Virus record (IMG/VR): IMGVR_UViG_3300024239_000011
Location: 248,001-312,000 of that record
Reading direction: 5' to 3' (one strand)
DNA length: 64,000 nt
Below the pieces are notes generated by a model, which made no database searches, was not told the origin of the DNA, and saw only the letters and a program-made list of their open reading frames with translations. Both the position numbers and the translations under genes were made by a program. Shown here in pieces: positions 44,601 through 63,874 of the stretch (positions are counted from its first letter, which is position 1; the number at the start of each line of letters is the position of its first letter).

Positions 44601-47600
44601 ATCGGGAGAATCTTCGACAATGTAAAATCGCGGATTTTCGAGTGGTACGGCTTGACTTCGTTGATGTATCCAATAATTGAGTCGGTCTTGTCTTTACGCA
44701 ACACCGGTTCTTGAATCAACGGCTCGTTGATACCCTTGATGAACAGAAACGATGTTTTGAATGCCCAATCGACCATCCGGTGTTCGGTATGAGCGTAATG
44801 TACCATAGCAAAGAACAGGGCATTGATTTCACCCTTGGACAGTAACCCTGGTATATCAGCATCACCCATCAATGCTTTCAGCATAGCCTTGAACTCAAGG
44901 CTACCATCACGGAGGCGGACAGTCTCCCAATATGCGTTCAAATCAGTTGGATGATTGTCCTTAATGATTTGGCGCCGACTTTCGTCGTAGAACCGATCAC
45001 TCAGCTTAATAGTACCATTCTTGTAGGCTACCATTTTCCAACGACCGAAGGCTTCACCATCAACCTTGCCCTGGTATTCCTGCCAGTACCAGAGGTCAAT
45101 GTCCTTTTTGTCAATCCGGATCAGATCGCCTGCTGAGAAACCAACCTCACGGTCGTGGATATCGCGTTCAACTTCACTTGGGAATACATAACGCGGGATG
45201 TTCAGCTTCGAATAACCAGTATCATACCAGTCAACGGTAGACCAGAAATCAATAGTTTTATAATGCTGAACTGCATCGCAAGACCAACGACCGGCAACGG
45301 TCGGATCGTAACTCCACAGAGACCAGAAGCCATAGGTTGAAGTATTACCACGAACCAGAACTCGGGTACCACGTTCTAGAACGAAGTCAGGGTCGATTTC
45401 CTTGGCATTGCGTTCGTCAAATGAGTCAACTTCCATGTGGTAGTCTAAATCACCAACTACCTCAAACCAATTGTTGTTGTCCACGCCAACCACTGCGTTC
45501 GAAACACACTGTATCCACTTGGTGCCACGATTGTCATTACCACGACGAACATAGATATTAGCCCCTTCCGGTAGGTGGCTACCGGCGGCACAATCAGTGG
45601 CGCGAACGAATACCTTGTCGTTTTCGTGGTAAACGTAGATGCCGTTCTCCGTGGCATCTATCTGGTTCTTCACCAGTACGCGGTTGCCCTCCCGGACAAA
45701 CACACGGTCGATGGTACCAGGGAATGTACCGCCAGTTAAATCAACGTTGCCGTCAATCGTCGCGGTGGCCAAATCGACATCAATCTTCGCAAGCAGACCT
45801 ATACTTGAACCAACATGCTTCTGCGCTACTAATGCCCGTGGAGATTTTTCAGTGAACGTCAGCAAACCTTCATCGGACGATTGAAGATACGTAAGATCAC
45901 CTTGCATGACCGGGCGCTTGGTCAGCATGGTATTCACTCGCTCTACAATGATGCGACGTGCCATGTAGCGGTCATTGAACCATGACTGGCGCGGACGGAA
46001 GAGGTTGCCATAACGTTCCACCGTGGACAGGCTCAGGTCGGGAACGTCCATGTATTCGACGTTGAAGCCAACCAACGAGTCGGTCATCTTTCGCCACAAT
46101 AATGGATCGGGGTATGACCGGTCATCACCTTCGCGCATCAACACCCATTCACGGTGAACGTTGTCTTCGCGGTCGGTACGACGATAGTTAACCTGAACAA
46201 TACTGTTCTCATCGTTGAGCAGATAATCAACACCTGAAATGATTGTCGCATCTGGTGAGATTGGTGCGAACCATGGCATATCAAATGTCGATGGGTTCTC
46301 AATGAACTTAGCAACCTGAGTGGTCGTCAATTTGCGCCATTCAACCGGGGGAACTGTTGCCTTGTTTTTGACCCAGAAATAGTATACGGTTTTATAATCA
46401 CCGGTAGCCGGATCATATTCGGTGCGCTCACACCATGCCGGGTTGTTGGCATCCTTTACTGATCCAGTTGGTTTGGCGTCAAATGCTTCGATTGCCTTAC
46501 CCTTGTTGATTTCGACTTGACGTGCCCATTCGGTGGGAGGAACCGTTGAACGGGTCCACTCGTACACATCAATCGTGGCACGGGGCGCCAAACGACCCCA
46601 CACGTACTTGCGATACTTGTTATCACTAATCTCGTAGTCGAGGAACTTGACGGTACTCAAATCCCACCACAGGCGATGTTCTTCTCCACCACCCCAGGCA
46701 ATTTCCGGATTCATACGATGGTATTTGGGGTCGCCATTATTGTATACTGCCGGATCAATTTCCAGTTTGTACCAAATTTCTGCATCAGCCGTGCCCGGTA
46801 TGATGCCCTTGGCAGGATCATACAGGTGAACGTACTGCTGTACCTCAGTGGTTTTCTTGTCATAGATTACCGCATTGAAAATACGATTGTTATCTACTTT
46901 TGCTGGTTGGATACGAACCGGTATGGTATCGAAATTATTACCGTTGTATTGATATACTGCATACTTACCATTACCCGCATCATCTACATAGGCAAGGTCA
47001 CCTGACAACCACTGCCCGGTATTCAGCGTTGCATTGCGTGCAGATATGGTTGCAAAACGGCGTGGGAAGAATTTCATCACGGCAGGACCAGTGGTTCCGC
47101 CCTGCGAAGTCCAATCAAACATGTCGTCAATTACCACCGGAATGATGAATTCCGTAGTAGATGGTACTGACTTCACATAATGAATACCACGTACATCCGG
47201 TATCGACTTGGTATCTGTAGTGATTACGATCAAGTCGTCAATAGCAAGATTATGGGTGTCCGAAACTGTGATTTTAGTTTCAGTATCCGACACATATTCG
47301 ACCTTGGTAACATTAACAACAGCCGTACCGAGGTTCTGAACAGAGAACATCTGCCATTCGTCATTGATGTCGTATACCCAAATTTTTTCACCCGTCACAA
47401 AGTTCTTACCCTTCTGAAGGATTTCGTAGTGAACACTGGACAAGTCGGTAAGATCAAGGGCATAATGATCAGATTCATCCACACGGGCATAACCAGCAAC
47501 CGGAAGATCACCCTCACGGGTTTCATTGATTGCGCGTAGCGGGAAAATGGTTTCCATTTCCCGGTTTGGTTTCACCACCCACCGGTTCTCGGTTTCTACC

Positions 47601-50600
47601 AACCGTCCAGCGTCAATGTCTTCCACGATAGTTGAAGCACTGGTGTGTGCGGACAACACCGAGTAATACCGGTTGTCGAATTTAACCTCTTCATATTTTG
47701 AATAGAAGGTATTCGGTGCCCATGACTGAACTTCAAGTGGAATATTGACTACATCATCGTTCGGCAGATCAGCAATGGTACTGTTGTTGGCGAAAAACTC
47801 AACCAACTGCGGACGTGACCGTACTTCTCGTTGACGCAACAAGAATTCAAAGGTCAATTTATTGGTAACGCCACCATAGTTTCCGACGCGGAATGCCCAT
47901 TCATCAAAGAATTTAACTTCTTCCGCGTCCAGCACAAAGAAACTACGCAAGAGTTTTTGCATAGCATCAGAGGTGCCTTTCTGACGCATGGCACCCTGGA
48001 AGAACTGGAACTCGGTCTTAGGATCAAGCAACAGATCATTCATATAAGCGCGACCCTGGTAGCCCACTAAGTGCAGCGAGTAATTACGCAGGGTTGGATT
48101 ATCTACCCCATCTTCAATACCAAAGAAATGACGGAAGTCATCCACGGTCTTTTCGAAGTTTGGGATCAAAACATTGTCGGTCACAATAAAACCGGGGGCA
48201 TCCATGCGCCCAACCCAATCCATTGACCGCGTTGCCGACAGACGGAGACGTGGCTGACGCAGGTTGAATACCGGATCATAGATCAGATCATTGAAAATTG
48301 TCACGTTGTCGAAAATGATAACGTGTTCAACTTCACTGACAAACAAACGGGTCAGATAAATCAATTGGTCGTTACGTGACGTGACCACCAATTCATTACC
48401 GACGCGCGAGACATCGGTTTCGCGCGGTTGTATCATAAAGCCATCGCGATTAAGCATCGAATATGCACCACGCACAATGCGTTCGATATTCTGTACTTCG
48501 CCATGGTCGGTGACGAATTTGACATATTTTGATGCCGGTGACAGTGCAATAGTATTACCCGGTGCCCAACGTCCGAGAGACCAGAACAAAAAGTCCTTGC
48601 CAACCGAGACCCAATCAATCGTCTCTTCGTTGGCAAAATCCATTTGTTCGAAAACCCATCCGTCTTTCTTCAGCCAGCGTCCATAATCCACAAGGAAGTC
48701 AAAAACATCTTGTGGATTGTAAAATTCAGTACCATACGGTACATTAAGAATGTTTCCGGCACGGTTTGCATCAAGATAATGAATTACCGTGATGCCTTTA
48801 TTATTCGGACCAAGATCAAGTGGTTTCCAGAAGGAATCCCCAAACTCTTCACCGGAACGATGGTTGTCAATGCACTTGTATTCAACTCCCTGATTAACAA
48901 CGATATCCCCTGCCGTGTACACAACATGAGCTTGCCATGGACGACCAGTTTTTTCGGTCTTACCAACGGCAACCTTGGTCTTGCGACCATTGATATCACT
49001 TGGAATGGTGCGGAATACTGGATCAACCACATCGTAACCAAACACCTTCCATCCTCGACCGGTCCACTGCACGATTACGCCGCTATAGGTGTGATCGGCA
49101 ATGCTCGGGCTGCGATATAGGAAGACGTTGATGTTTTCGCTCGGGACCAAACCGAAGTTATCGGCACGAGCCTGTAAGGTGTTCTGATCCACAAACCCCG
49201 CCATTTTGTGACCAAGACGCACGTCAATACCACGAATGACCTTACCGAACGCCTCGGTAATATCCTGACCACGGCTTTTGATGTAATCACAAACCCATTG
49301 TTGTACCCCGGTCACGCGATAACGCTGCGGAAGATCAACCTCAGAGGATTCTTCGCCATGCAAGGTCAAATAGCTGTGCGGACGACGGGCACGAATATCA
49401 TCGTACACCCACTGACGGGTTTGCTTCTGGTTGCGATAAATTTCCTTCAGGCGGACGGTATCCCAACAGTATTCGATCAGTCGCACCGGCTTGATCAAAT
49501 ATCCGCTCATGGTAGCAGCGAACGGGAAGTTCGGGCTGCGGCGCCATGCGGTTTCTGTCGGTCCATGATCCCCGAATTTCCATTCCTGCTGTGCTTCAAA
49601 CGCAGTCGGAAGGCGCGAACAAATACCAGCAGATACCGGATCAATCAAATTACCAAGATCATCTACCGGAATGTACTGCGACATTCCGGGACGCTGGTAC
49701 TCTGAATAGGTACCAGCGGTCGGTCCACGAGCGATAATGCCGTTTTCAAGATCGCCCCACAACTTGGTATTGCCGCGCGTATATGGAGCCACGCCGTAAT
49801 GGGCATCCCACCAATCCGGCTTTTGTGACATACCAAGCATTTCCCATGGGTGTGTATGGGGGCGGTCGGTATCAAAATAGTACAAATAGATGCCACGCCA
49901 ATGCCCTGGCAACGGCTGCCCGTCACGATCAGGAACCGCTCCGTAATTCCATGTGAATGGATTGTCGGCAATCCACGTCTGGTTTTCACGATAATTGACG
50001 CGAGACATCGTTGCCCACCGTTCAAAGGCAGGACGGATAATGCTGTTCCATTCAGCCCATGAATAATCGGTCAAATAGCCTGCACCACCCTCACTCGCGG
50101 GGCGCCGGAATTTACCAGATACGTACCGACGATGGTCGAAAATCCGTTCAGCCCCTCGTTGGGCAAAACGCAGCGACGAATTGTTGTAAACGCGCTTCTC
50201 AAATTCGAGTACAACGCTGTTCAGGAACTCATATTCCCCGGTGAAGCTTTCGATATACGAACCATCATGTGCCTGAATAAACTGACGTGGGTTCAGCAGC
50301 GTCTCATCCACTACCATCCCAGGACGGAAAATAGCATAGATGCCCATTTGAGAGGGCGACGGTGGCACGTAGGTGAAATACCCATCATACCGGATCAGAC
50401 GAATTTTATCGGTTTCATTGAGGCTGAAATCGCCAAGCAGACGTATTTCGTCTACGTCAGTCTCGTAGTCCCACCCACGATCCAATAATTTCGGAAATTC
50501 GCCGTTCTTTTCCAAATAGACGAATGATTTTTCGATGTTCTCGCGGGTGCCTGGAATCAGATATTCGTTGACACCGGTAAAGCAGTCCACCGAAACTTCG

Positions 50601-53600
50601 AAAACCTTGAAGTTATCACCCGCCGGGCACATTGTGGAGTATGCAAAGGGGAAATCAACAGTCTTACCAACATTGATTTCTTCCAATGCCCGATTGACGA
50701 AATCTTCAGGGGAAATCAGTCGATCAATACCCTGCTCATAGATATCCACAATCTTACGGATAAATTTGTTACGGAAACGGCTGAACTCATGTTCCGCATA
50801 CTGTATCGACAACATGAAGTCAATGTTTTGATCTGATGCCATAATCATAGTCTTCAACATCGGCGCTCGATGTTGAAGAATTACGCGACCAAACGAACGA
50901 TCCTTTGGGGTGTCACGGTAGTTGTTTACCCCGTACACGTTCCCGTTAAAATTCTTCTGACTCTTCAATATCGTCGTGAAGTGATCAAAGAATTCATTAT
51001 AACTGATTTCACTTACTTCACGAGAATCCGGGTTGCCCTGAAGATTGAACGGAACCTCATAGACGCCAACCAGATTATCTGGCGCTCGCCGCACATAGGT
51101 GTAAATGGTCACAAGGTTATTCTTCGCAACACCGTTACGCAAACTGACAACACCATCAGATACCGAATAATCAGTGTACAAATTGAGTTCTTCGGCATTA
51201 ACCATTACAGAAATGGCATCCGGATCGATCAATTCATCAACGGTTAAGTTGTGCGAAATTGCGAAATCAGTTTGACCTTCGGTAGAGATGTAGGTGTGTT
51301 TGATGCGCTGACGGCTTGGCATATCCACCAAGTACCAGTCGTTTGAATAATCAAAACTGCCATCAATTTTCTGGGTACGATGGAAGTAATACCCCGTAAT
51401 CTCATCCTTATCCAGGGCATAATTGAACCGTTCGGTGGTTAAGTAATTCTTGTAAATGGGATGACCACTTGCGCTGTGTTTGACGCGCATTTCAAGAATT
51501 GTGTCCATTGGAACGCCCGCCGATGCTTCATCGGTGAATCCAAAAACGCGGCTACCGGCGAACGTGGATTCTGGGTAACGCCCCGGATCATCCAAGGCAA
51601 CGCCGTCGATGTCGTAGAGTGCAAATAATGGGGGCTGGTTCGAGTGGGTCTTGCGCTGAACTTCAATCCAGTTGTCGCCATCGAAGCGGAAATCACGGTC
51701 AAGGTTTGAGAACCCGTATCGAGAACGAATGGTGTCGCCAACCGAAGGAAGACCACTTTCATTCTCGCCAACAATGACCGGCGATAGTACCACACGTCCA
51801 GTGGATTTGATACCAGATACACGGTAAATGCGATTGTTGTATTCTGGGTTTGGATCATTGGTGATCAAGATGGTCATACCATCGCGGATCAAAATGCCCT
51901 TCTCGGTATCCCAGATAATCGCGGTGATCTTGGTTTGTGCAGTCCCGGTAGGTTTACGAATGCTTAGTGTGTTATTGGCGTTGATACGATAATCGAAACC
52001 AATACGCACTGGACGATCATTGAAATAGAATACCGCACGCAACGCTTCGTCCGGAGTTAACCCAAGACCCATCGTCGGATTGGATAGATCAATGGTGTAC
52101 GATCCCGCATCGACAAACCAAGTCGAAGTCGGATCATTGGCAGTATCTACCCAGTTTTTACCACGTGCTGATACATCAAGCAGCAAGGGTGCAATACCAA
52201 ACTCACGTAACGGGGGCTGATTGTGAATAAAATCAGGATTGGAAGCAGCGAACCCATTGATCTGAGTGAACGTTAATACGTCTTCCTTAACATCCACATC
52301 ACCAACACGACGTTGACCATACTGATACAATTCCAAATTACGCTTGAACTCAATGATTGGACGCTCAGCGCGAATCGCGTCGTCCGTACCACGGTCGGCA
52401 CGAGCAACGACATCCTCGTGGAACCACCGGTTCCCGCGACTCCATGGATTGCCGTCAATACAACCACGCTCCATCACAAGATAATCTGGACGGGCACTGG
52501 TTGTCGCCAAAGCAACACTACCCCAACCAAGACCCTGCTCGGCATCCCACCCAAATGGTTCAATGCGCAGATTGATTTCTTTTCCAACCCCGGCAACTTT
52601 ATACATACAGGTCTTGTAGGTATACTTGGTGACTTGTTCGAAACCATATGTAACAAAGATGATCAGCATGTTGTTGGTCAGCGCAATCGGCTCGGACGGC
52701 GACGCATACGATGCTTCCCATTTGTCGTCATAGGGGTCAGTCACATCCGGTGGGGTCATCGGATCAAATGGACGCCACGGGTTGTCCTGATTTGCTCGCT
52801 TGTAATGACCACTAAAATCAAAATATTTCTTACCGTTAATGGTCGTGATGAAGTTTTGAATATCAGTATTCGGGTCTTCAATGAAAAATACGTAGGGTGT
52901 GACCGTATAACGACCAAGATCATCCCAGCGATGACCACCTTCACCCTCTGGTTCTTCAATCAGGAATGCAGATACACCAACTCCTTCAATAATGAAAGTC
53001 TTGTTGTTGAACTGATCGCTATTCACGTCGCGGCGAATAGTCAAACGCATTCCACTGGTGAGGGTTAGCGGTTCTACCGTTCCGTCGTGCGGCTCAGTGA
53101 TGCTGTCATCAGACGGCAGCCGATATTTTCCCGTGAATATTAATGGATAATCCGTATTCCCGACCAAAGTTCGTTCCACATCAGTCAAACTGAGAATTTC
53201 AATCGGTTTCGGTCCACGCGGCATCCAATAATACCGTTTGAAATTCATAAGCTTATCGATGTCTACCGGCGGACACCATGAATAAAACTCATTGTCGAAA
53301 AGACGGTTATGGTCGTTTATCAAACCGCCATGAAAACGCAGATGGTTCAATAGATCATCGTAGAACAAAGCATGCGTCACCGAAGCAGTTTCCGTGGCGC
53401 GGCTGATTGCTATGGGTTCCATCGAATAATCTTGGCGTGTCTTTGATGGCTCCTGAATGTAGAAATCCTTTTCAGGGTCAGTATACAATGGATAGCGTCC
53501 AATGTATCCACTGACTACTTCCGATGCCTGTGGCTGGAATAGATGATCTACAGTGGCGCCAAAAAACCGCTGAAGGGTCTGGCTTTGAAGAACCGAAGGC

Positions 53601-53632
53601 AAATGCTTGATTACTTGTCTTTTCTCGACCAT
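38666..53632 (-). CDS. Giant (4988 aa) baseplate/virion structural protein
   Basis: Uninterrupted 15 kb ORF; YINEVKPYHSKIR; YFDTDRPH..PWEM; four W/Y-x4-Y-x2-(G/N)D CBM5/12-like repeats; RVLVKNQ...ENGIY fibre motif; TAAATA at 53664-53669. Confidence 0.85.
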   Translation of the reverse strand: MVEKRQVIKHLPSVLQSQTLQRFFGATVDHLFQPQASEVVSGYIGRYPLYTDPEKDFYIQEPSKTRQDYSMEPIAISRATETASVTHALFYDDLLNHLRFHGGLINDHNRLFDNEFYSWCPPVDIDKLMNFKRYYWMPRGPKPIEILSLTDVERTLVGNTDYPLIFTGKYRLPSDDSITEPHDGTVEPLTLTSGMRLTIRRDVNSDQFNNKTFIIEGVGVSAFLIEEPEGEGGHRWDDLGRYTVTPYVFFIEDPNTDIQNFITTINGKKYFDFSGHYKRANQDNPWRPFDPMTPPDVTDPYDDKWEASYASPSEPIALTNNMLIIFVTYGFEQVTKYTYKTCMYKVAGVGKEINLRIEPFGWDAEQGLGWGSVALATTSARPDYLVMERGCIDGNPWSRGNRWFHEDVVARADRGTDDAIRAERPIIEFKRNLELYQYGQRRVGDVDVKEDVLTFTQINGFAASNPDFIHNQPPLREFGIAPLLLDVSARGKNWVDTANDPTSTWFVDAGSYTIDLSNPTMGLGLTPDEALRAVFYFNDRPVRIGFDYRINANNTLSIRKPTGTAQTKITAIIWDTEKGILIRDGMTILITNDPNPEYNNRIYRVSGIKSTGRVVLSPVIVGENESGLPSVGDTIRSRYGFSNLDRDFRFDGDNWIEVQRKTHSNQPPLFALYDIDGVALDDPGRYPESTFAGSRVFGFTDEASAGVPMDTILEMRVKHSASGHPIYKNYLTTERFNYALDKDEITGYYFHRTQKIDGSFDYSNDWYLVDMPSRQRIKHTYISTEGQTDFAISHNLTVDELIDPDAISVMVNAEELNLYTDYSVSDGVVSLRNGVAKNNLVTIYTYVRRAPDNLVGVYEVPFNLQGNPDSREVSEISYNEFFDHFTTILKSQKNFNGNVYGVNNYRDTPKDRSFGRVILQHRAPMLKTMIMASDQNIDFMLSIQYAEHEFSRFRNKFIRKIVDIYEQGIDRLISPEDFVNRALEEINVGKTVDFPFAYSTMCPAGDNFKVFEVSVDCFTGVNEYLIPGTRENIEKSFVYLEKNGEFPKLLDRGWDYETDVDEIRLLGDFSLNETDKIRLIRYDGYFTYVPPSPSQMGIYAIFRPGMVVDETLLNPRQFIQAHDGSYIESFTGEYEFLNSVVLEFEKRVYNNSSLRFAQRGAERIFDHRRYVSGKFRRPASEGGAGYLTDYSWAEWNSIIRPAFERWATMSRVNYRENQTWIADNPFTWNYGAVPDRDGQPLPGHWRGIYLYYFDTDRPHTHPWEMLGMSQKPDWWDAHYGVAPYTRGNTKLWGDLENGIIARGPTAGTYSEYQRPGMSQYIPVDDLGNLIDPVSAGICSRLPTAFEAQQEWKFGDHGPTETAWRRSPNFPFAATMSGYLIKPVRLIEYCWDTVRLKEIYRNQKQTRQWVYDDIRARRPHSYLTLHGEESSEVDLPQRYRVTGVQQWVCDYIKSRGQDITEAFGKVIRGIDVRLGHKMAGFVDQNTLQARADNFGLVPSENINVFLYRSPSIADHTYSGVIVQWTGRGWKVFGYDVVDPVFRTIPSDINGRKTKVAVGKTEKTGRPWQAHVVYTAGDIVVNQGVEYKCIDNHRSGEEFGDSFWKPLDLGPNNKGITVIHYLDANRAGNILNVPYGTEFYNPQDVFDFLVDYGRWLKKDGWVFEQMDFANEETIDWVSVGKDFLFWSLGRWAPGNTIALSPASKYVKFVTDHGEVQNIERIVRGAYSMLNRDGFMIQPRETDVSRVGNELVVTSRNDQLIYLTRLFVSEVEHVIIFDNVTIFNDLIYDPVFNLRQPRLRLSATRSMDWVGRMDAPGFIVTDNVLIPNFEKTVDDFRHFFGIEDGVDNPTLRNYSLHLVGYQGRAYMNDLLLDPKTEFQFFQGAMRQKGTSDAMQKLLRSFFVLDAEEVKFFDEWAFRVGNYGGVTNKLTFEFLLRQREVRSRPQLVEFFANNSTIADLPNDDVVNIPLEVQSWAPNTFYSKYEEVKFDNRYYSVLSAHTSASTIVEDIDAGRLVETENRWVVKPNREMETIFPLRAINETREGDLPVAGYARVDESDHYALDLTDLSSVHYEILQKGKNFVTGEKIWVYDINDEWQMFSVQNLGTAVVNVTKVEYVSDTETKITVSDTHNLAIDDLIVITTDTKSIPDVRGIHYVKSVPSTTEFIIPVVIDDMFDWTSQGGTTGPAVMKFFPRRFATISARNATLNTGQWLSGDLAYVDDAGNGKYAVYQYNGNNFDTIPVRIQPAKVDNNRIFNAVIYDKKTTEVQQYVHLYDPAKGIIPGTADAEIWYKLEIDPAVYNNGDPKYHRMNPEIAWGGGEEHRLWWDLSTVKFLDYEISDNKYRKYVWGRLAPRATIDVYEWTRSTVPPTEWARQVEINKGKAIEAFDAKPTGSVKDANNPAWCERTEYDPATGDYKTVYYFWVKNKATVPPVEWRKLTTTQVAKFIENPSTFDMPWFAPISPDATIISGVDYLLNDENSIVQVNYRRTDREDNVHREWVLMREGDDRSYPDPLLWRKMTDSLVGFNVEYMDVPDLSLSTVERYGNLFRPRQSWFNDRYMARRIIVERVNTMLTKRPVMQGDLTYLQSSDEGLLTFTEKSPRALVAQKHVGSSIGLLAKIDVDLATATIDGNVDLTGGTFPGTIDRVFVREGNRVLVKNQIDATENGIYVYHENDKVFVRATDCAAGSHLPEGANIYVRRGNDNRGTKWIQCVSNAVVGVDNNNWFEVVGDLDYHMEVDSFDERNAKEIDPDFVLERGTRVLVRGNTSTYGFWSLWSYDPTVAGRWSCDAVQHYKTIDFWSTVDWYDTGYSKLNIPRYVFPSEVERDIHDREVGFSAGDLIRIDKKDIDLWYWQEYQGKVDGEAFGRWKMVAYKNGTIKLSDRFYDESRRQIIKDNHPTDLNAYWETVRLRDGSLEFKAMLKALMGDADIPGLLSKGEINALFFAMVHYAHTEHRMVDWAFKTSFLFIKGINEPLIQEPVLRKDKTDSIIGYINEVKPYHSKIRDFTLSKILPMETGHARVTDFDKPVFPLDRTIKDHAVIDVVWNGDGTYTIADPYTATDFRNSRHHKDWYENFQKIADDHYPVRSMKTTIHFDRVKWIDWYVDGEQALLKLYREHYGQREESTTKRAHRLGDRVWFHNYDGLNQDHWKVVYLRSPNHPIPTRIASLKPGASNRVIVKTPANHNVVAPHYDMNPSAYDANISYVVGDIIRWRTKNYLCIKSYVSTGDFDGEKLKHWSDAIPQIAAYVVIPQPIPEVVLTGDGHTKLFELPFRVDEHDLEVYVDGRLLDWATTANYYTDGDALEISRDNDAKTYTPDYEIVSMEQREDIVIRGTSTGTIALKNIPYHESTISVKVKRNLRGVKAWAAEKVYVVNDLAKHSGSVFVCTTSHTSVDFATDQSNWELITPDAIIPRNGTPRVTNADPLYTFMYGNGQIVMISPTPKSGDQLMITYKTDPGVRLRINETPKDGQTIYIRRRSQTTMVGAYKVMKYVDANTIEIKASLPSDIIFGSDNIPMNLLTYRDDVLTLVNEKGDNITVPYDNTMDPNLLTQAERIMLYYRPTPGMPAKDMRELLDINFKGTRMDGGDLLDTKFSEDVGNHVPVMNFVYNGQDEVPVTYWQDGMDNSLGWGDHIFDSIRDKMDGDVVVVEYNGIVQLSDAYDFYYNTTEDLWKVRFNALPNHGDLITVAVVTNDIVDGVETTMSEKKSTRYYDMNIMGGTFTAPASTSGFDDVIVDGGFFLAGPSKTFEALDGQQDFQLDGAPVVGVIGSADDLNWHARVYVNGRRRLDGYHLENIAGTWHVIFDESVVQGTEVRIELQGKPAMTNPYMDENRPQELIATRTADSLGITVYTEATAGAPSVVSARYEADDVTTHFELRQKPSSRETVFVTVGLDGENMMLEMVSRNPMTGDPLFSSDTAVRADQYYLHWDTGVVELGIAPPKGAVIKITSFSTGGTNVENIDTFVSVGVGEFTLTKLPAATPNIRVWTQAGTQPVTEITEFNVIEQQLFLGVAPTEGTLVTVTYEIEDAASNDFQNNQNQRIVEIARFSPTNGIMPPLMLKNPEGITYSQSHISVVRDGEVLSLGDYSVIKHDTGTHEVVLTDGEPGEVAIVAFNTPNIVKVRTHQYQYTAGEPIILTDVPSPTVPHHGAVLVYKKITEADLICENGQPAGTSIGDPLVADDVGRGIRLMPPTTRYFLGDGGCFAYRFERPITSVADTQIWIGQNTTPLVPVYPAGTVGGDATGTVDVGSFTIPQRFRGPIDANDALPCDGDDDLKAGDYFVIEGYFGFDDGGYDGVPFDNTPKPEGTNVRNWLGVAFAGTWATKGMNRPNPNQTNQNEFGFEDGDMILYLGRGRWSRMITSAGMRNTGNYAASLARAVEEATREIHFFDAPSKNADICFVWYEHGKYDYDIKNGNELHLYGPTFAGLTLEDGDWITVTTFSDDEAMGIRTEVFTATVNGKYPLTRVPSDANSLWVNTNGRRNIYGMDYTIQNSTIGWDNLSWDAYFGWDDNRSRPLVSFNNRHSGDWRVVVTTFTNRSAQQPVGFRLFKNSQDEWEYLRIADAHKTKLNTALDFDDRHMQVVDAKVFVTNNEAAILSRKDVTMYATTATLVVNIDLLSSTPVPPVHVVVSDNAAGGAADGIITHADIAMAINSNADLRAVTISAAITEHGHLIIRRVDGQDFSISDSASDALATAFFGNNVVSSVRPLLTPEAVFVDGERIEYMGIDVVNNRLLNIRRGTGGTSSGIRNIYRNHMEVSDGLKEEFILPGWFDPMNDDAVMIKAEYVDHGKVMVKEYRKESYTVTRNDTDEVVVKFPYAPTEGWVLTFSATVSNWEISGASYPAGTIVVDGGAPQYIPGGYRWEGLLDKGFQGQLDAIPVGTKGVTQADAGRWYQLSRAYDAELLDIRVIIEHEGFVDPETGETRTIEEQLIRYQDWFIDGTILKFRRNIPAPTNGQNNIILHLRSYRGLQYSNSAMAQFLREKPATHYWGN

Positions 53633-53980: not shown

Positions 53981-54463
53981 ATGTCCAGAACTGTTCGTAA
54001 GGTTCCCAATTGGGTGTCCAATCGCCACTGCAACAAGCATTTGGATAAGCCGTGTGCGGTTAGCTCTCATGGCTCCCCGCGCAAGTTCGATACCGACCGC
54101 GACATGTTCATCTTCGAATATACGCATGGGCTGTCGAAGCCGATGAACCTGTTCGCGGGTGACGGGGTTTTGGTTGGTCGCAAGGGCGCCAAGGCGGTCA
54201 AGAAGGCGTATTCCAAGAAGGCGCGTCGTCAGAGCATGGCGGTTCTCGAAGCCGAATTGCTGATGGCGATGGAACCCATCGATCCGATCTTCGACCCCGA
54301 GGATGATTACTTCCCGTCGTATGACGACGATCTGGACCTCGATCCGTTCGATGAGCATTATGCGGCGAACGACGATTGGGATTACGTCGATGACGGGATG
54401 GATTTCTGCGATCCCTGGTACGACGATTACCACTCCCACTATTACCCCATGGCTGCGGAGTAA
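53981..54463 (+). CDS. Hypothetical protein, basic N-terminus and Asp/aromatic-rich tail
   Basis: GGAGG RBS; composition. Confidence 0.75.
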   Translation: MSRTVRKVPNWVSNRHCNKHLDKPCAVSSHGSPRKFDTDRDMFIFEYTHGLSKPMNLFAGDGVLVGRKGAKAVKKAYSKKARRQSMAVLEAELLMAMEPIDPIFDPEDDYFPSYDDDLDLDPFDEHYAANDDWDYVDDGMDFCDPWYDDYHSHYYPMAAE

Positions 54464-54683: not shown

Positions 54684-54746
54684 TATCACTTGACTTTTAG
54701 TACGGTGAATGTCAAAAATCCATAAGCGTTCACCGGAGTTTTCGCC

Positions 54747-55358
54747 ATGCCCTACGACCCCAGTGCTTTCATTCACTTCGCGATGCAGAACGGCGTGTTT
54801 CCTGAAGGCGGGAAGTACGGTGATCGTATTACCTTCACCATCCATGCGCCCAATAATCTAATGTTGGTGTTGGACGCCGGGCGGAATACCGGGGTACTGC
54901 CGCCCTCGTTGGAGTTCGACAAGCGCAACGGTAAGATCACCAAGGTCTGCAATGGGTTCGACAAGTACCCCGAAATGCTAAAGTGGATAATCACCTGCTA
55001 CGTGTCCCAGCGCGTCACCCGTATGACTGGTTTGAAGGTAATCAAGATGACCCAACTGGTCGATTACGACGCTGCCACCCAGGAATTCGACAAGATGGGT
55101 CGCGGCGTCCGCTCTGGCATTCGTGACTGGTTCACGCGCCTGGGGCAGGACATGCTTGCGGTACCAGTGATGGAGGCGCTTGCCCTCACCGAACGTGCGA
55201 TGATACTGCTGTCGAAGTTGACGGAAGAACAGGCGGATGTTCTGTATGAGGAAACGGAAACCGTGCGTCGCAAGTCGCAATTGGGTTTAATCGAATATAT
55301 GTCGGAGCAAGAGATTCTGGTTGAATTGCTCGACCAGATTGAGAAGGAAGTTCAGTGA
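54747..55358 (+). CDS. Hypothetical protein abutting the repeat array
   Basis: GGAG RBS; stop codon 6 nt before the first repeat; no Cas motif recognised. Confidence 0.75.
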   Translation: MPYDPSAFIHFAMQNGVFPEGGKYGDRITFTIHAPNNLMLVLDAGRNTGVLPPSLEFDKRNGKITKVCNGFDKYPEMLKWIITCYVSQRVTRMTGLKVIKMTQLVDYDAATQEFDKMGRGVRSGIRDWFTRLGQDMLAVPVMEALALTERAMILLSKLTEEQADVLYEETETVRRKSQLGLIEYMSEQEILVELLDQIEKEVQ

Positions 55359-55364
55359 TCATTT

Positions 55365-56284
55365 CTGTCGCACCACGATCCGTGGTAATTTCTTAGGTAC
55401 GGTTTGTCCACCATGGTACTATCGCACCACGACTGCCGTGGTATTTCTTCGCTTTTACGGCTGGGTCCATGGCCACGCCCGTCTTTCGGACCACGAGCAG
55501 ATTGCCGTGATATTTGCTTCAAAGAAAGCACAAGGAATGGCGCTCTGCGAAACACTTTCGCACCACGATTGCCGTGGTATTACCAACATTCACGGTAATG
55601 GTTCTGAATCTGCGGCTTTCGCACCACGAGCAACCGTGGTATTGCCTTCCAACGACAGGAGGAATGCATGCGCAGTCTTTCACTTTCGCACCACGAGCAG
55701 ATTGCCGTGGTATGTTTCCCTGATCGGGACGACATCTACGCCCTGTTCAGACTTTCGCACCACGAGCAGATTGCCGTTGGTATTGCTTCGCGCGACCTGA
55801 TCAATTTCCTCGAAGAGATTCGCCTTTCGCACCACGGGTGAATTGTCGTGGTATTTGCTTCCGATGAAATGGAACATGCCGCCAAAACCGACGTACTTTC
55901 GCACCACGGGCAAGTTGCCATGGTATTGCTTCACCAGCAAAAACAGACCGCATGTCGCGATGGTCAGCTTTCGCACCACGGGCAAATTGCCGTGATATTG
56001 CTTCCAGCTTGGTCACCACCAGCGTGTCGCCCTCGCGCTTTCGCACCACGGGCGAATTGCCGTGGTATTGCTTCTCTGACTATCGCCAAGCAGCAGGTCG
56101 ATCTCTATCGCACCACGGGTGAATTGCCGTGGTATTGCTTCCCCCGGCAACTACCTTGCCTTCGTCCATGTTGATCCTTCGCACCACGGGCGAATTGCCG
56201 TGGTATTGCTTCCCATAGCTGCTGGATTTGACAGCATGATGTTCGAGCTTTCGCACCACGGGCGAATTGCCGTGGTATTGCTTC
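55365..56284 (-). CRISPR. CRISPR-like array, 14 repeats and 13 unique spacers (about 26-35 nt)
   Basis: Plus-strand consensus CTTTCGCACCACGGGCGAATTGCCGTGGTATTGCTTC (37 nt); starts at 55365, 55419, 55483, 55555, 55616, 55683, 55752, 55824, 55896, 55968, 56038, 56105, 56176, 56248; hairpin ACCACGG/CCGTGGT; decay increases leftward; minus strand ends in GAAAG (orientation inferred). Confidence 0.9.
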
Positions 56285-56344
56285 ACCGCGCGCCCTGAGT
56301 ACACGTAGCCGTCATGTAACGGGCTGTCATGTGCAGTTATCGAT

Positions 56345-56488
56345 GCATACCACGGTTCTCGTGGTGCGAACGACACCCTGTTCAAGGGCGTCGATTTGTA
56401 TTTGGTAATACACCACGCCAATCGTGGTGCGACAGCTACCTACAATCGTTGCCAACAGTCCTATAACAATACCACGACAATCGTGGTC
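56345..56488 (+). CRISPR. Three inverted degenerate repeats with two spacer-sized gaps
   Basis: ATACCACGGTTCTCGTGGTGCGAAC, ACACCACGCCAATCGTGGTGCGACAG and AATACCACGACAATCGTGGTC are reverse complements of the short-loop variants in the main array. Confidence 0.75.
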
Positions 56489-56563
56489 TTTTTATTTGCC
56501 ATACTATACAGACAGGTGTATGCATGTATGCATGAATGATTAACCGAATCATGAGGTGCAAAT

Positions 56564-58723: not shown

Positions 58724-59740
58724 TTAATACACCAATTCGTCTTGTTCGTGACCTTCGTAAATGATAATCTGCCCGGATACCGCCAGTTCCTTAGCAATAA
58801 CGACGATGAGCGACTGCGCCTGATCCACGTCGCGTAGGCGTACTGGTCCCATTGCGTCCATGTCTTCCTTAAGCATTTTTGCCGCACGTTCGGACATGTT
58901 CTTCATGAACAAGTCTTTGATGCCATCAGAGGCACCCTTGAGCGCCAGGGACAGTCGGTCTTTTTCCACCTGACGCAGTAATGTTTGGATACCAGCGGCA
59001 TCCAAGCGCACCAAATCCTCGAAGGTGAACATCAGCGCCTTGATCTTTTCCGCCGATTCGCGGTTGCGTTCTTCGAGCGAGGACATCAAGCGGTTTTCGG
59101 TGGTGCGGTCGAGGTTGTTGAAAATATCTGCCATCAATTCGTGGGTATCGCGGCGTTGGGTGCGGGCGAGGTTGCCCATAAATTCGGTACGCAAGATATC
59201 TTCAACCTGATCCAACACTTCCTTCTGTACCGCCTCCATACGCAGCATGCGCATCACCACTTCCATGGCGAAATTTTCCGGCAGTAGTGCCAGCACGCGG
59301 GCGGCGTGGTCGGGCTTGATCTTGGCCAGCACGACGGCGACGGTCTGCGGGTATTCGTTCTTCAGGTAATTGGCCAGCACCGCTTCGTTGACGTTGCCCA
59401 GCTTGTCCCACATGGTACGACCAGCGGGACCGCGAATCTCTTCCATGATTCGGCTGGCTTGATCGCTGGGTAATGCCTTAGTGAGAAGTCGTTCCGTGCT
59501 TTCGATGGAACCGACTAGCGTACCAGTGGTCAAAAGGTTGTCTGCAAATTCTGCATACAGAGTTTCGATCAATTCAGGCGTAACGGTGCCTAGGTTCGCC
59601 ATGATCTGCGACACTTCCTTGATTTCGTCATCATCAAGGCGGTGCAGAATTTGCGACCCGTGATCTTCCCCGAGTGCCATGAGGAAGATGGCGGCTTTTT
59701 GTGGACCCGTCAGGCAACGATAGTCGGTCTTTATCGGCAT
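58724..59740 (-). CDS. fliG: Flagellar motor switch protein FliG, alphaproteobacterial type
   Basis: [54 protein letters not shown]; full length; TAAATA at 59769-59774. Confidence 0.97.
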
Positions 59741-60084: not shown

Positions 60085-60807
60085 TCAGTCACCCTCGTTT
60101 TCCAATGGTTGCCACCCGTTCGAGCCGCAGACTTCGAGCGGTTTGAAGCGGGTTTTATATTTCATGGTTTGTGCCCCTTTTACCCAAAATCCCAGATAGA
60201 AATACGGAAGGTTTTGGCGTTTGAGTTCTTCAATTACCCAGAGGATCGCAAAAGTACCTAGCGACCGTTTATCCATGGACGGCTCGAAGAACTGGTAGTT
60301 TCCAGAAAACCCGTCATTCAATCGGTCGATCAGGGTCACTCCGATAAGATGCCCATTGGCATCCCGGAATTCGTATAGGAACGTTTCAATCGGGCTGATC
60401 TCAACCATCGACCGATAGTCCTCAAAACTCATCAACGCCATGTCACCGCCAGTGTGTCGCGTTTCCTGATAGCGTGTGAACAATCCGTATTGTTCCTTGG
60501 TCGCAACATTCTTCACGCGAGTAACAATCAAATCGGTATTTGTCTTGATAATTTTGCGCATGGTGCGGTCAGGAGCAAACCCATCAACAACAATACGCAC
60601 AGATTTACACTCCGAGCAGCCCGTGCAGGTTGGAGTATAGATGATGTTATGACTGCGCCGATAGTTTGACGCTGCCATATCACTATAAAATTTCTCGGCA
60701 TTTTTCAGGCTGGAAATTTCAGTCACGGTTTTACGTTCAGCCCGTGCCGGAAGATATGGGCACGGCAGCGGTGACGTTGTGAAGTAATATGGAGATTTTC
60801 TCGTCAT
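60085..60807 (-). CDS. ate: Bacterial ATE/Bpt family aminoacyl-tRNA--protein transferase
   Basis: PCPYLP..ERK, YRRS...Y.P.C..C..C.SVRI, Y...RH..G.M, SLGTF.IL, YLGFWV, M.YK.RF.P.E. Confidence 0.93.
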   Translation of the reverse strand: MTRKSPYYFTTSPLPCPYLPARAERKTVTEISSLKNAEKFYSDMAASNYRRSHNIIYTPTCTGCSECKSVRIVVDGFAPDRTMRKIIKTNTDLIVTRVKNVATKEQYGLFTRYQETRHTGGDMALMSFEDYRSMVEISPIETFLYEFRDANGHLIGVTLIDRLNDGFSGNYQFFEPSMDKRSLGTFAILWVIEELKRQNLPYFYLGFWVKGAQTMKYKTRFKPLEVCGSNGWQPLENEGD

Positions 60808-60881
60808 TGAACACCTGTGATACACCACCCGCCATGTTAGCGTTCTGGTTGTGCATTGTCAATGATCGCCTAAATACGATC

Positions 60882-61119: not shown

Positions 61120-61929
61120 ATGATGGCGATTACGTATACACTTAATAAAACAGATGGAACACAACTTTGCATTGTAAATGAGCTTGTTGAAGATACAACC
61201 ACAATTCCATTGGCGCTTTTTGGTAAAAACCGACTTAATTACGGTAAAAAGCTAAACGAAAATTTTGTTAAGCTACTTGAAAACTTTAATGACGCTGCCG
61301 CGCCATCCAATCCTCTTATCGGGCAATTGTGGTATAATCGTACAACAGGCGATCTCAAGCTATACAATGGTACAACATTTGCTGGTTTGAACGCCGATAC
61401 GTTGGACGGCGTTCATAGTGATGAACTGTTGCTAAAATCTCAAAATTTAGCAGATTTACCAGATAAAGCAACCGCGCGTAGTATTTTGTCCGTGTATGAA
61501 AAAACACAGGTATATACCCGAGCAGAAACGTACTCAAAAACTGAAGCTGAAAGTTTATTTGTCAATGTATCCGGCGACACCATGACCGGGTTCTTGTCTC
61601 TTCATGCTGACCCTACGAATGCACTTCACGCCACCACCAAACAATATGTGGATAACCTCGGTGCCTATGGTCACACCGATAACCCAACCATCGCCGCTGG
61701 TACCTATGTGGACTACAACCTTCAGACTATTTTTGCAGACGCAGGGTATGACGCGAGGGCGGCAGATGTTGGTGTGAAGGTTCTCGACGTAACTAGTGGT
61801 TCGCCAACTGAGAATTGGTATATTGACGCAGGAGCGGTTGCAACTATTGCAGTAAACAATACCACAGTGCGAATAATAAACGAATATACGTCGGCACTTA
61901 CTTTCTACATCACAATTATCAAGGTCTAA
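61120..61929 (+). CDS. Tail-fibre/baseplate-associated protein
   Basis: YTLNKTDG, LFGKN..NYG..LNENFVKLLENF, P..GQLWY, GDTMTG.L, HATTKQYVD; TAAATA at 61087. Confidence 0.8.
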   Translation: MMAITYTLNKTDGTQLCIVNELVEDTTTIPLALFGKNRLNYGKKLNENFVKLLENFNDAAAPSNPLIGQLWYNRTTGDLKLYNGTTFAGLNADTLDGVHSDELLLKSQNLADLPDKATARSILSVYEKTQVYTRAETYSKTEAESLFVNVSGDTMTGFLSLHADPTNALHATTKQYVDNLGAYGHTDNPTIAAGTYVDYNLQTIFADAGYDARAADVGVKVLDVTSGSPTENWYIDAGAVATIAVNNTTVRIINEYTSALTFYITIIKV

Positions 61930-61930
61930 T

Positions 61931-63874
61931 ATGATCACCCGCACATACTACCGCGCAAATGGTAATTTCATATTGGTCCCTGACCGTGGTGTCAAAACCG
62001 CAGCGGACTACTATGGCTATAATACTTTATATGCGTCATCTGCTGCTAGTGGATATCAGGAAAGCTCAAAGGTCACCTTGCACTTGTACGAGGACATGAC
62101 GACTGGAAAATTGAGCTTGCACGTCATAAACGACATGTCCCAGGGATTGGGTGATACCGGTGGTGGTGCTAACTATGTTGTGGTGGATAATCTTCCGACA
62201 GGACATCAAGTAATTGCAGCGGATGATCCTGGCGAGGCATGGTCTAATAGTACGACACAGGCTATTGGTAATTTTGGATGGGGTGATTGCTGCACTGATG
62301 GTATGGTAATCGATAATATTCAAGATATGACTGCAATTATGATTACCTGTTCTGGGTATAGCGGCGTTGATCAATTCAAGCTTGCGAGCTATGATGGACG
62401 CATTCAATATCTCCCTCTGACAACAACACTAACAATCGAGAAGATTGTCGAAGAGATAGACGAAACATTGTTTTTACAAGAAAACCCGGTCGCAGGGCAA
62501 TACACAGGTTCTCAAGTTGTATCTTTTACTAAGGCGGCGAATGTTACTGCTAAAATCGCGCTCAATGCCACCCCATCCAATTCAAAAATTATCGCATATG
62601 ACGCCAATGAAAATCCATTCATTGCGGTCGTTGATGACGGGCGTGGACGTGTAGTCTTTGATGGCGGGTTCCCTAGATACTACAACTCAAATTGGAACGG
62701 GGTTGGGTATTACACTCTGCTCAAAGCAGAGCATATGTTTCTCTATCAATGCATGAACTGGATTGTCAATCCGGTAAAGGTTCGTAATGGTAATAAGTCA
62801 ATACTAATATTCAATGACAGCATCACTGGTGAGAATTACCCACTCAGTTCGTTTAATACAACATTGGATGGGGTTGCCGCGATTGCCGGTTATACTCTTG
62901 TACACAAGGATCGGTCAAGCTTTGGGGCAGGAGATCAAGTAACAATCCCATTTGTTGAACTTGATCAGTATGCAGCGGTTATTGTGTTTTCAACAAGATA
63001 CTGGGGTTCGCCCAGTATTACGGCAGAAACCGGGGCAAATTTCAAGATATACCGGGAAGCCGGAAACGGTATTATGGTGATCACGGACCATTCCGATGGC
63101 ACAACGTCATTTCAGCATACCGCGAACGTTATTGCAAACCAGTTTGGGGCTAATTTTTACGGGTCTGTGGATAGAACCCCCGTCGCAGTTTCGACGTTGA
63201 AGCAAAATTATGGCGTCCATCCTCTTTGGAATAATATCCCTGGAAGTATTGTTGGGGGAGGTAGTGAAGGTAATATATCCGTCACCAATTTCCCTGATTA
63301 TAATGACACGTCGTGGGTAATTGATCCGGCAGACATTTACACCTTTAATGCTCTTGTCCAAGACGAGATTGGGTTCTTCTATCATTTCTCATTTGGATAT
63401 GCAATTGGCGTTGATGAACCGATACAATTGAATTTTTCACCGGAGACATTGAAGGATGTGGTGAACGTTGATTTCTACGTCGCTCAATATGCCGGTACTA
63501 CGAGTGGGTTTGTGATTGATGCCATCGGAAATGTCCTCGGGTCATTTCGTAATGATGGGACGTTCTCAATGACGTGGTACGATCCAGATTTCGCGACCGT
63601 ACAATTGACGAAAGGTGATGCGCCAATTGTAATCAATATTCGTGTTACGCATCCCTTCTCGTATACCAAGAAAGTTTCTCTGATACGCTATGTGAAGGCG
63701 TGCAATCCTTTAAGTTCATCTTCAATTCTTGATGCACTTCATGGTGCTGAGTTGCGGGATCATCTTGGATCACCAGCAAGGATTATTCGTGACTTCCGCG
63801 ATATTACCAATAATGATCCAAACAAGAAACCATCATTTGCGCTGTCATATCTGTACTACTATTTGCTTCCGTGA
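61931..63874 (+). CDS. Putative virion/tail-associated protein
   Basis: Long ORF coupled to the fibre gene; GRVVFDGGFP, VITDH motifs; function not recognised. Confidence 0.6.
   Translation: MITRTYYRANGNFILVPDRGVKTAADYYGYNTLYASSAASGYQESSKVTLHLYEDMTTGKLSLHVINDMSQGLGDTGGGANYVVVDNLPTGHQVIAADDPGEAWSNSTTQAIGNFGWGDCCTDGMVIDNIQDMTAIMITCSGYSGVDQFKLASYDGRIQYLPLTTTLTIEKIVEEIDETLFLQENPVAGQYTGSQVVSFTKAANVTAKIALNATPSNSKIIAYDANENPFIAVVDDGRGRVVFDGGFPRYYNSNWNGVGYYTLLKAEHMFLYQCMNWIVNPVKVRNGNKSILIFNDSITGENYPLSSFNTTLDGVAAIAGYTLVHKDRSSFGAGDQVTIPFVELDQYAAVIVFSTRYWGSPSITAETGANFKIYREAGNGIMVITDHSDGTTSFQHTANVIANQFGANFYGSVDRTPVAVSTLKQNYGVHPLWNNIPGSIVGGGSEGNISVTNFPDYNDTSWVIDPADIYTFNALVQDEIGFFYHFSFGYAIGVDEPIQLNFSPETLKDVVNVDFYVAQYAGTTSGFVIDAIGNVLGSFRNDGTFSMTWYDPDFATVQLTKGDAPIVINIRVTHPFSYTKKVSLIRYVKACNPLSSSSILDALHGAELRDHLGSPARIIRDFRDITNNDPNKKPSFALSYLYYYLLP

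Follow-up and report, generated by a model that had tools for sequence, protein, structure and literature searches.

A block of short hairpins in a window of 64,000 nucleotides of viral DNA (the whole stretch analysed, positions 248001-312000 of a 543,035-bp IMG/VR virus record) raises the question of why repeat stems should stay fixed while the loops they enclose vary from 3 to 10 nt, and of what kind of locus would preserve such units. Matches to virion and tail-fibre proteins adjoin the block and the record holds 66 tRNA genes predicted by ARAGORN, which together identify the record as that of a huge phage. It is a fragment, since an ENA contig of 869,618 bp (ERZ27245855 k141_178484) has the identical array and extends past the record end by at least 9.7 kb of new sequence; if that contig represents a single phage genome, it is larger than the 735-kb genome that PMC7162821 gives as the largest.

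Several further features of the phage were recorded. Among the matches listed, 43 tRNA genes lie on the minus strand at G000 77583-154000, and one tRNA gene has a 4-base anticodon (ctta). Within the window, 38666-53632 (minus) is a single ORF of 4,988 aa for which a weak CBM_5_12 match is the only family hint, 58724-59740 (minus) encodes a full-length homologue of the flagellar-switch protein FliG (N, M and C domains, E 1e-35 to 1e-42), and 60085-60828 (minus) encodes an arginine/leucine-tRNA-protein transferase homologue, the last two being conserved in the sister strain described below. PADLOC annotation of 133 proteins at G000 199-412 kb gave, among the matches listed, which were dominated by redundant methyltransferase models, five viperin-like (pVip) proteins, several type II or orphan methyltransferases, homing endonucleases and LmuB-like matches. 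Sequence past the record end (L080 1-1978) holds a DNA topoisomerase or gyrase A-type gene that is split by a LAGLIDADG-domain intein, and sequence on the other side (L079) a class I aminoacyl-tRNA synthetase.

The block comprises 17 copies of an ACCACG-centre-CGTGGT hairpin at 55365-56494, of which 14 are direct (55365-56284) and three inverted (56341-56494). The direct cores start at 55372, 55426, 55490, 55562, 55623, 55690, 55759, 55831, 55903, 55975, 56045, 56112, 56183 and 56255, and the inverted cores occupy 56349-65, 56412-28 and 56471-87. The modern full unit of 37 nt reads CTTTCGC, 22 further nucleotides and ATTGCTTC on the plus strand, and GAAGCAAT, ACCACGG-loop-CCGTGGT and GCGAAAG on the minus strand, a form that can also be written ACCACGG..CCGTGGTGCGAAAG. 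Hairpin centres are 3-11 nt long (ATC, ACTGC, ATTGC, AGCAAC, AGCAGATTGC and the GGCAAGTTGC/GGCGAATTGC group, with AGAAC, ATTGG and ATTGT in the inverted copies), and repeat lengths fall into classes of 30-34 nt and 37-38 nt. The copies and centres are those reported in an earlier note on this DNA, made from the letters of the sequence, which had described 17 copies with kept arms and a variable centre, and its two length classes were likewise recovered. Arms are perfect in 13 of the 17 copies; r3 and r10 read CGTGAT and r9 reads CATGGT, all being G>A on the plus strand and hence G.U on the minus strand, as had been proposed for the lower-stem changes in these three repeats, and r7 carries an insertion of one T. 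The accompanying claim that upper-stem changes favour the plus strand held, at the seventh pair, for copy 8 only, whereas those in copies 3, 6 and 7 give A.C on plus and G.U on minus. The minimum-energy fold is the hairpin for all 17 copies in either sense, and the three newest repeats are identical to one another.

Regular direct repeats of about 23-47 nt with unique spacers of like length, the criterion for a CRISPR array, are what the block displays: the period is 54-72 nt and the 13 spacers of the direct copies are all unique and 24-35 nt long. A non-CRISPR origin, as REP-like or terminator hairpins or as sites for a dimeric DNA-binding protein, would account for the arms forming a perfect inverted repeat and for the terminator-like scores of r1, r2 and i17 (the last inverted copy), but it is scarcely credible given the 54-72-nt register with unique spacers, the spacing of 3-11 nt between half-sites, which is incompatible with a fixed dimer site, the lack of further copies in the 543 kb, and, as set out below, a spacer that matches mobile-element genes and the cas genes at homologous loci.

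In the sequences searched, the repeat appears to be confined to this locus. A covariance model of the copies gave exactly 17 matches in the 543-kb record (E 2e-12 to 2e-4), the next-best match there having an E of 0.59, and the exact pattern CCACG..CGTGG occurred 21 times in the genome, 13 of them in the 5-kb bin of the block. No other CRISPR-like periodic array was found in the record. Exact-pattern scans of IMG/VR, 185,579 species genomes and JGI metagenomes found no repeat array elsewhere, returning only single chance matches and the window's own contig. Rfam CRISPR-DR families gave no match to the repeat even at E up to 10, and an Rfam Trp-leader match over i16-i17 was judged to be chance.

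Six-frame searches of the same record, which accounts for just some 62% of a contig that is 870 kb or longer, found no Cas1, Cas6 (three models), Csy4, Cas5, Cas7 or RAMP match and no match to type IV Cas5, Cas6 or Cas7 models, and PF09704 and PF05107 (Cas5d/I-C) were absent from it. Nor was a cas gene physically linked to the window repeat found anywhere in the data searched. The flanking small proteins, considered as possible Cas-like partners, have no Pfam or PHROG family, and the 203-aa neighbour protein yielded no homologue. Two TnpB-like genes (Cas12f1-like_TNB), the sole matches in the record, were also rejected as array partners, being 110-240 kb away, IS-like and 83% mutually identical. 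In all, three such TnpB-like genes (Cas12f1-like_TNB / OrfB_IS605) were noted, at G000 61214-62389 (plus), G000 191873-193048 (minus) and L080 2148-3347, encoding about 391-400 aa with about 82% DNA identity; they are IS-like and unrelated to the array repeat.

The origin of the block became traceable through strain variation at the site. In three DNA runs of the same study, contigs agree with the window to 55356, diverge and rejoin it at 56496. A pattern scan for the variant junction returned nothing, and the alternative allele, L075, was recovered via a 90%-identity cluster mate of the 136-aa neighbour. Its flanks are 97-98.6% identical to the window on both sides, and by blastn the strain-variable cassette at 55360-56495 is replaced in it by 8.5 kb, the letters at the junctions being those of the loose ends in the reads. 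The sister strain bearing this allele co-occurs with the window strain in the same samples. The neighbouring 203-aa gene is itself rearranged between the two alleles (L075 15639-16038 against window 55061-55359): the alignment is limited to the last 99 codons, after which come 100 nt of other sequence and a 55-nt overlap, and in L075 the gene is called as an 87-aa fragment.

The insert of L075 encodes Csf3/Cas5 (9.6e-26), a Cas6e-like protein (1.2e-12; L075 9481-9984), a 237-aa protein, Csf2/Cas7 (3e-13) and a DinG/Csf4 helicase (2.7e-41), and is a type IV-A system. The operon, csf3 / csf1-like / cas6 / csf2 / dinG, spans roughly 6 kb and has an array on each side. One begins 22 nt past dinG with seven identical 35-nt repeats (...CACCCCCGCATTTGCAGGGGGTTCGTTAG) followed by four old units with shorter hairpins, and the other, across the operon by the 136-aa gene, consists of four short, degenerate copies in opposite orientation. 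The same operon is present in L078, a third phage contig of 251,722 bp with a Csf2 51% identical, where 18 copies follow dinG and the far side of the operon holds about 15 degenerate copies in opposite orientation. L083, a type IV-A locus that is more distant, is likewise flanked by arrays on either side and has a CCACCC/GGGTGG stem. Members of this Csf2 clade are very rare: a set of 1.84 billion proteins contained 3 representatives at E < 1e-10. A search for the cognate cas operon of the window repeat among Csf2 relatives led to P0007, whose 1.7-kb contig has no array, and the 870-kb contig bore none of the weaker Csf2 clusters. At L075 14044-14171, a strong terminator hairpin, bidirectional in form, closes the array after dinG, and beyond it stands a single inverted repeat unit on its own (minus strand, ATCACCCCAGCAGGGGTTCGACAG).

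The window, L075 and L078 have in common a stem base of ACC/GGT and a 7-nt handle [T/G]CG[A/T]NAG (NCGNNAG), of which position 5 is the tolerant site in all three alike. Overall repeat identity is low, and the covariance model of the window repeat (R1) does not score the repeats of L075 and L078; the link between the window repeat and type IV-A is one that synteny and repeat design would suggest. The arrays of the window match those of L075 and L078 in order and orientation, and the counterpart of the inverted copies is the second array beyond the 193-aa gene, with 4 copies in L075 and about 15 in L078. Array 1 (55365-56284; 14 units and 13 spacers) heads towards the 203-aa gene, as in the sister loci, and its sense was therefore assigned to the minus strand, while array 2 (56341-56494) heads towards the 136-aa gene in the same manner and was assigned to the plus strand. 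The twin-array layout explains the three inverted copies (i15, i16 and i17) as a second array. The earlier note had left the orientation open, describing a handle of about 8 nt in either sense; the handle proved to be 7 nt, GCGAAAG on the minus strand, and synteny settles the strand.

In this orientation r14 (56248-56284) is the unit nearest the former cas side and r1 (55365-55394) stands at the old end of array 1, adjoined by the 203-aa gene (54747-55358, plus). Degeneracy rises towards 55365, consistent with the minus orientation. At the old end (r1-r5, 55365-55649), loops are 3, 5, 10, 5 and 6 nt long and the 5' tail is decayed, with the stem and a GCGANAG handle retained. A segment of 56 nt (56285-56340) stands in place of the roughly 6-kb operon of the sister strain. 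The three degenerate units of array 2 have 5-nt loops and handles GCGAACG and GCGACAG, that of i17 being gone; the hairpin of i17 followed by TCTTTTTATTT (56471-56497, plus) is terminator-like, with a T run, and lies at the right edge of the cassette.

Read along the plus strand, a promoter-like site (54690-54719) is followed by the 203-aa gene and then by the block, with the i17 hairpin and T run last. This tidy unit speaks for an alternative in which the 14 direct copies are a plus-strand, I-C/I-G-like array that shares a transcript with the 203-aa gene and stops at the i17 terminator. The plus-strand repeat ends, TCGC...CGTGG(T)ATTG, are reminiscent of I-C repeats and would also fit, as would the one spacer with matches, the plus strand of which is antisense to a recombinase mRNA. 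This alternative is nevertheless quite unlikely: it would place the degenerate units at the leader end, turn the arm changes into C.A mismatches, make the 3' tail ATTGCTTC the least conserved part of the repeat, and require a sense opposite to that given by synteny with the sister loci, and Cas5d was not found in the 543-kb record. The suggestion in the earlier note of a Cas5d enzyme is not favoured for the same two reasons, its absence from the record and the inferred minus sense. Plus-strand read-through into the block is possible and would yield array 1 as antisense.

With the strand assigned, the parts of the repeat could be compared for their rates of change. Across the 17 copies, 4 of 205 cells are off consensus in the arms and 14 of 119 on the handle side, compared with 33 of 139 in the 8-nt tail and 59 of 170 in the centre. 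Among the eight old copies the contrast is sharper, with 1 of 96 in the arms against 28 of 66 in the tail and 46 of 80 in the centre, as expected under the selection on the hairpin for which the earlier note had argued. In the minus sense the 7-nt handle is almost fixed across copies, the 3' arm CGTGGT is unchanged in 17 of 17, and the three substitutions in the 5' arm are all C>U, giving G.U pairs; given three transitions, the probability that all are C>U is about 0.125, which alone is weak evidence. The spacing of the units is regular, so that no unit has dropped out and the contrast in conservation is not merely an effect of how copies were recognised.

The covariance model of the 17 copies that the earlier note had called for found all 17, and only here, but a test for covariation within the array gave zero compensatory changes, so that here the constraint could in principle bear on the sequence itself and not on pairing. 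Across the three loci (window, L075 and L078), in an alignment of 31 mutually related units trimmed by best pairing, 95.7% of stem cells are paired compared with 81.7% in shuffles, none of 500 shuffles reaching the observed value, and three of the six stem pairs show compensatory changes on both sides. The arrays that stand beside cas genes decay in a like manner: in L075 the modern loop of 9 nt gives way to loops of 6, 5 and 3 nt at the old end, and in L078 a loop of 7 nt gives way to one of 5 nt; neither handle is affected, and no loop of the old units in either exceeds the modern loop length. A comparison of change rates in stem and loop, also put forward in the earlier note, gave a far lower rate for the stem within the window array. 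Five window units have one common 5-nt gap in the loop, which may go back to a short ancestral repeat and not to separate deletions, and r3, a long-loop copy, is flanked by short ones. Selection on the hairpin is supported by the contrast between the arms and the tail and centre, the like decay in cas-linked arrays and the covariation across loci. It was concluded from these sequence comparisons that stem and tag are probably the constrained parts and loop and tail the free ones, as would be expected for recognition by Cas6 and Cas5.

In published type IV-A crRNAs the 5' tag measures 7-8 nt and Cas6 is retained at the 3' hairpin (PMC11519345). In the mechanism proposed for the present block, the two arrays diverge from a centre that lacks the operon found between them in the sister phages, and each repeat encodes an 8-nt tail, a hairpin with an ACC...GGT base and a 7-nt NCGNNAG handle. 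Since Cas6 of type IV-A systems binds the hairpin, cuts at its 3' base and stays bound, with Cas5 holding the 7-8-nt tag, the handle and the stem (most of all the 3' strand of the stem) would be constrained and the apical loop and 5' tail free. Old units would then lose letters of the loop and tail by deletion-biased decay and keep a foldable stem, and such decay acting on a constrained stem would produce the pattern of fixed stems with loops of 3-10 nt. Cas6 recognition would be the selective agent, and the cassette would once have had a cas operon of its own. The block most probably derives from a type IV-A array pair, and we regard it as likely that it is the remains of a type IV-A-like CRISPR locus, twin arrays without their cas operon, shaped by Cas6-type constraint.

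A different use for retained hairpins would be as decoys, the short-loop copies acting like Racr RNAs and soaking up Cas6 or Cas7 from a type IV or type I system that belongs to the host or to a rival. The retention of hairpins while the guide-side tail decays would suit this role, the stem-loop is critical for inhibition in Racr RNAs (PMC10651486), and a sister phage bearing type IV-A is present in the same samples. The copies lie, however, in regular repeat-spacer register and not solitary behind a promoter, this stem is not known from any array of a host or rival, and the same decay is seen beside the phages' own cas genes, where a decoy role would be senseless; we consider this role very unlikely.

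The spacers and the signals around the arrays bear on whether the arrays of the probable type IV-A remnant are still in use. Spacer 10 (about 56005-56038) matches Methylobacterium pAMS5c at 33 of 35 positions (E 2e-4), and its target is the conserved GDTLVV.KLDR region of the catalytic domain in serine-recombinase genes of many plasmids and one phage, the plus strand of the spacer being antisense to the recombinase gene. Contigs that match spacer 10 alone, with unrelated GC-rich flanks, occur in the same subsurface samples (runs X2 and X4) and are candidate protospacer-bearing elements with a serine-recombinase gene. The other 12 of the 13 spacers had no match in phage or plasmid collections, no self-target of the spacers was found, and neither was cross-targeting among the spacers of the three phages and their sequences. 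That the recombinase genes matched lie on plasmids and a phage agrees with the bias against plasmids published for type IV systems (PMC7038947). Five assemblies, each from a different sample, have the same array and show 0-1 difference over 2,228 nt. Neither the 56-nt segment nor the minus strand upstream of r14 yielded a promoter-like site; L075 has TGTATAAT just ahead of its first repeat. An RNA library (run X5) contained a contig of 151 nt over r2-r4 at depth 2 and with no strand information, which may be carried-over DNA; the run is too thin and strandless to show transcription. Run X5 is a wastewater metatranscriptome from another study, and its contigs, identical to 54179-54436, 55139-55289 and 55424-55574, indicate that the phage or a near-identical relative occurs beyond the subsurface site.

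These observations can also be read as signs of an active orphan guide set, loaded in trans on a type IV-A or other Cas6-type complex and silencing competing mobile elements, with the complex supplied by the host, a host plasmid, a part of the phage genome not yet seen or a co-infecting phage. The identity of the newest three repeats, variation of the handle at the same tolerated position as in cas-linked arrays, the plausible targets of spacer 10 in the same samples, the unchanged array in five assemblies and the RNA-library contig over r2-r4 would all agree with continued use; cas genes may lie in the rest of the contig of at least 870 kb, and the use of host Cas proteins has been proposed for cas-less huge-phage arrays (Al-Shayeb et al. 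2020, PMC7162821). Weighing against it are the absence of the repeat array from the species genomes, IMG/VR and JGI metagenomes, the lack of any Cas6, Cas5, Cas7, Cas1 or type IV model match in the 543 kb, the missing promoter-like site upstream of r14, and the depth, strandlessness and possible DNA origin of the RNA contig. Cross-processing by the sister strain's machinery is doubtful because its repeat stem differs. An active orphan guide set is possible but on balance doubtful, and the arrays are probably now either inactive or dependent on a cognate Cas set in trans. The proposals of the earlier note that old units may still be functional, or that variants may load different host effectors, likewise gained no support, neither a cas gene in the 543 kb nor a host array with this repeat having turned up.

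A related but unlikely idea, suggested by the conserved hairpins and handles of the sequence, is that the arrays are kept on purpose and might let the phage borrow or jam rival type IV-A machinery. The rival would be the co-occurring sister strain or a host plasmid, met in co-infection or in plasmid-bearing hosts. If this were true, a phage of 870 kb or more would exist as one strain with only guides or decoys and a sister with the whole system at the same hot spot.

When compared with known systems, the block as a type IV-A remnant has mixed affinities. Type IV-A loci (Csf1-3, Cas6/Csf5 and DinG) are found on plasmids and some prophages, and their repeats are about 28-29 nt long. Like them, the present site has Csf2, Csf3, a Cas6e-like protein and DinG in the sister strain at the exact position, no adaptation module, a 3' hairpin with a 6-7-bp stem and a 7-nt GCGAAAG tag on the minus strand, and one spacer matching a plasmid-typical gene. 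Unlike them, the window strain is without cas genes at the locus, the repeats are 35-37 nt, the carrier is a huge lytic-type phage and not a plasmid, and the sister loci belong to a very rare Csf2 clade with twin arrays flanking the operon. As the defining cas genes are absent, the block cannot be filed as a type IV-A locus.

The block is an instance of the cas-less huge-phage arrays of PMC7162821, with which it shares a compact array, a genome of more than 200 kb and the lack of adaptation or interference genes nearby; it departs from them in that its origin is traceable to a cas-bearing allele in a co-occurring strain and that no host array with a like repeat was found. As in degenerate repeats at trailer ends generally, identity to the newest repeat drops with distance from the leader or cas side, but here the decay is partitioned, the loop and 5' tail being degraded, probably with deletions, while the stem and handle are nearly invariant, and it spans eight old units and the whole second array. 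Racr and other solitary repeat units (PMC10651486) are similarly phage-borne hairpins without cas genes in which the stem-loop is critical, but the block is not a solitary-repeat Racr, all copies being in spacer register with no matching host repeat and no promoter directly upstream.

New here are a rare Csf2 clade on huge phages, repeats of 35-37 nt, an operon with twin flanking arrays, the exchange between strains of a complete for a cas-less cassette at one site, and a reproducible, partitioned decay of repeats. An otherwise ambiguous orphan array thereby becomes a traceable case, in which two co-occurring strains differ by a cassette swap at one site, one having a complete and very divergent type IV-A system and the other only two arrays. 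The strains form a natural pair for testing whether cas-less phage arrays still work, and bear on how type IV systems are gained and lost on phages rather than plasmids. The natural series of loops of 3-10 nt on one stem bears on which parts of the repeat Cas6 needs, and partitioned decay, seen in three loci, could serve to orient arrays and to predict Cas6 determinants from sequence.
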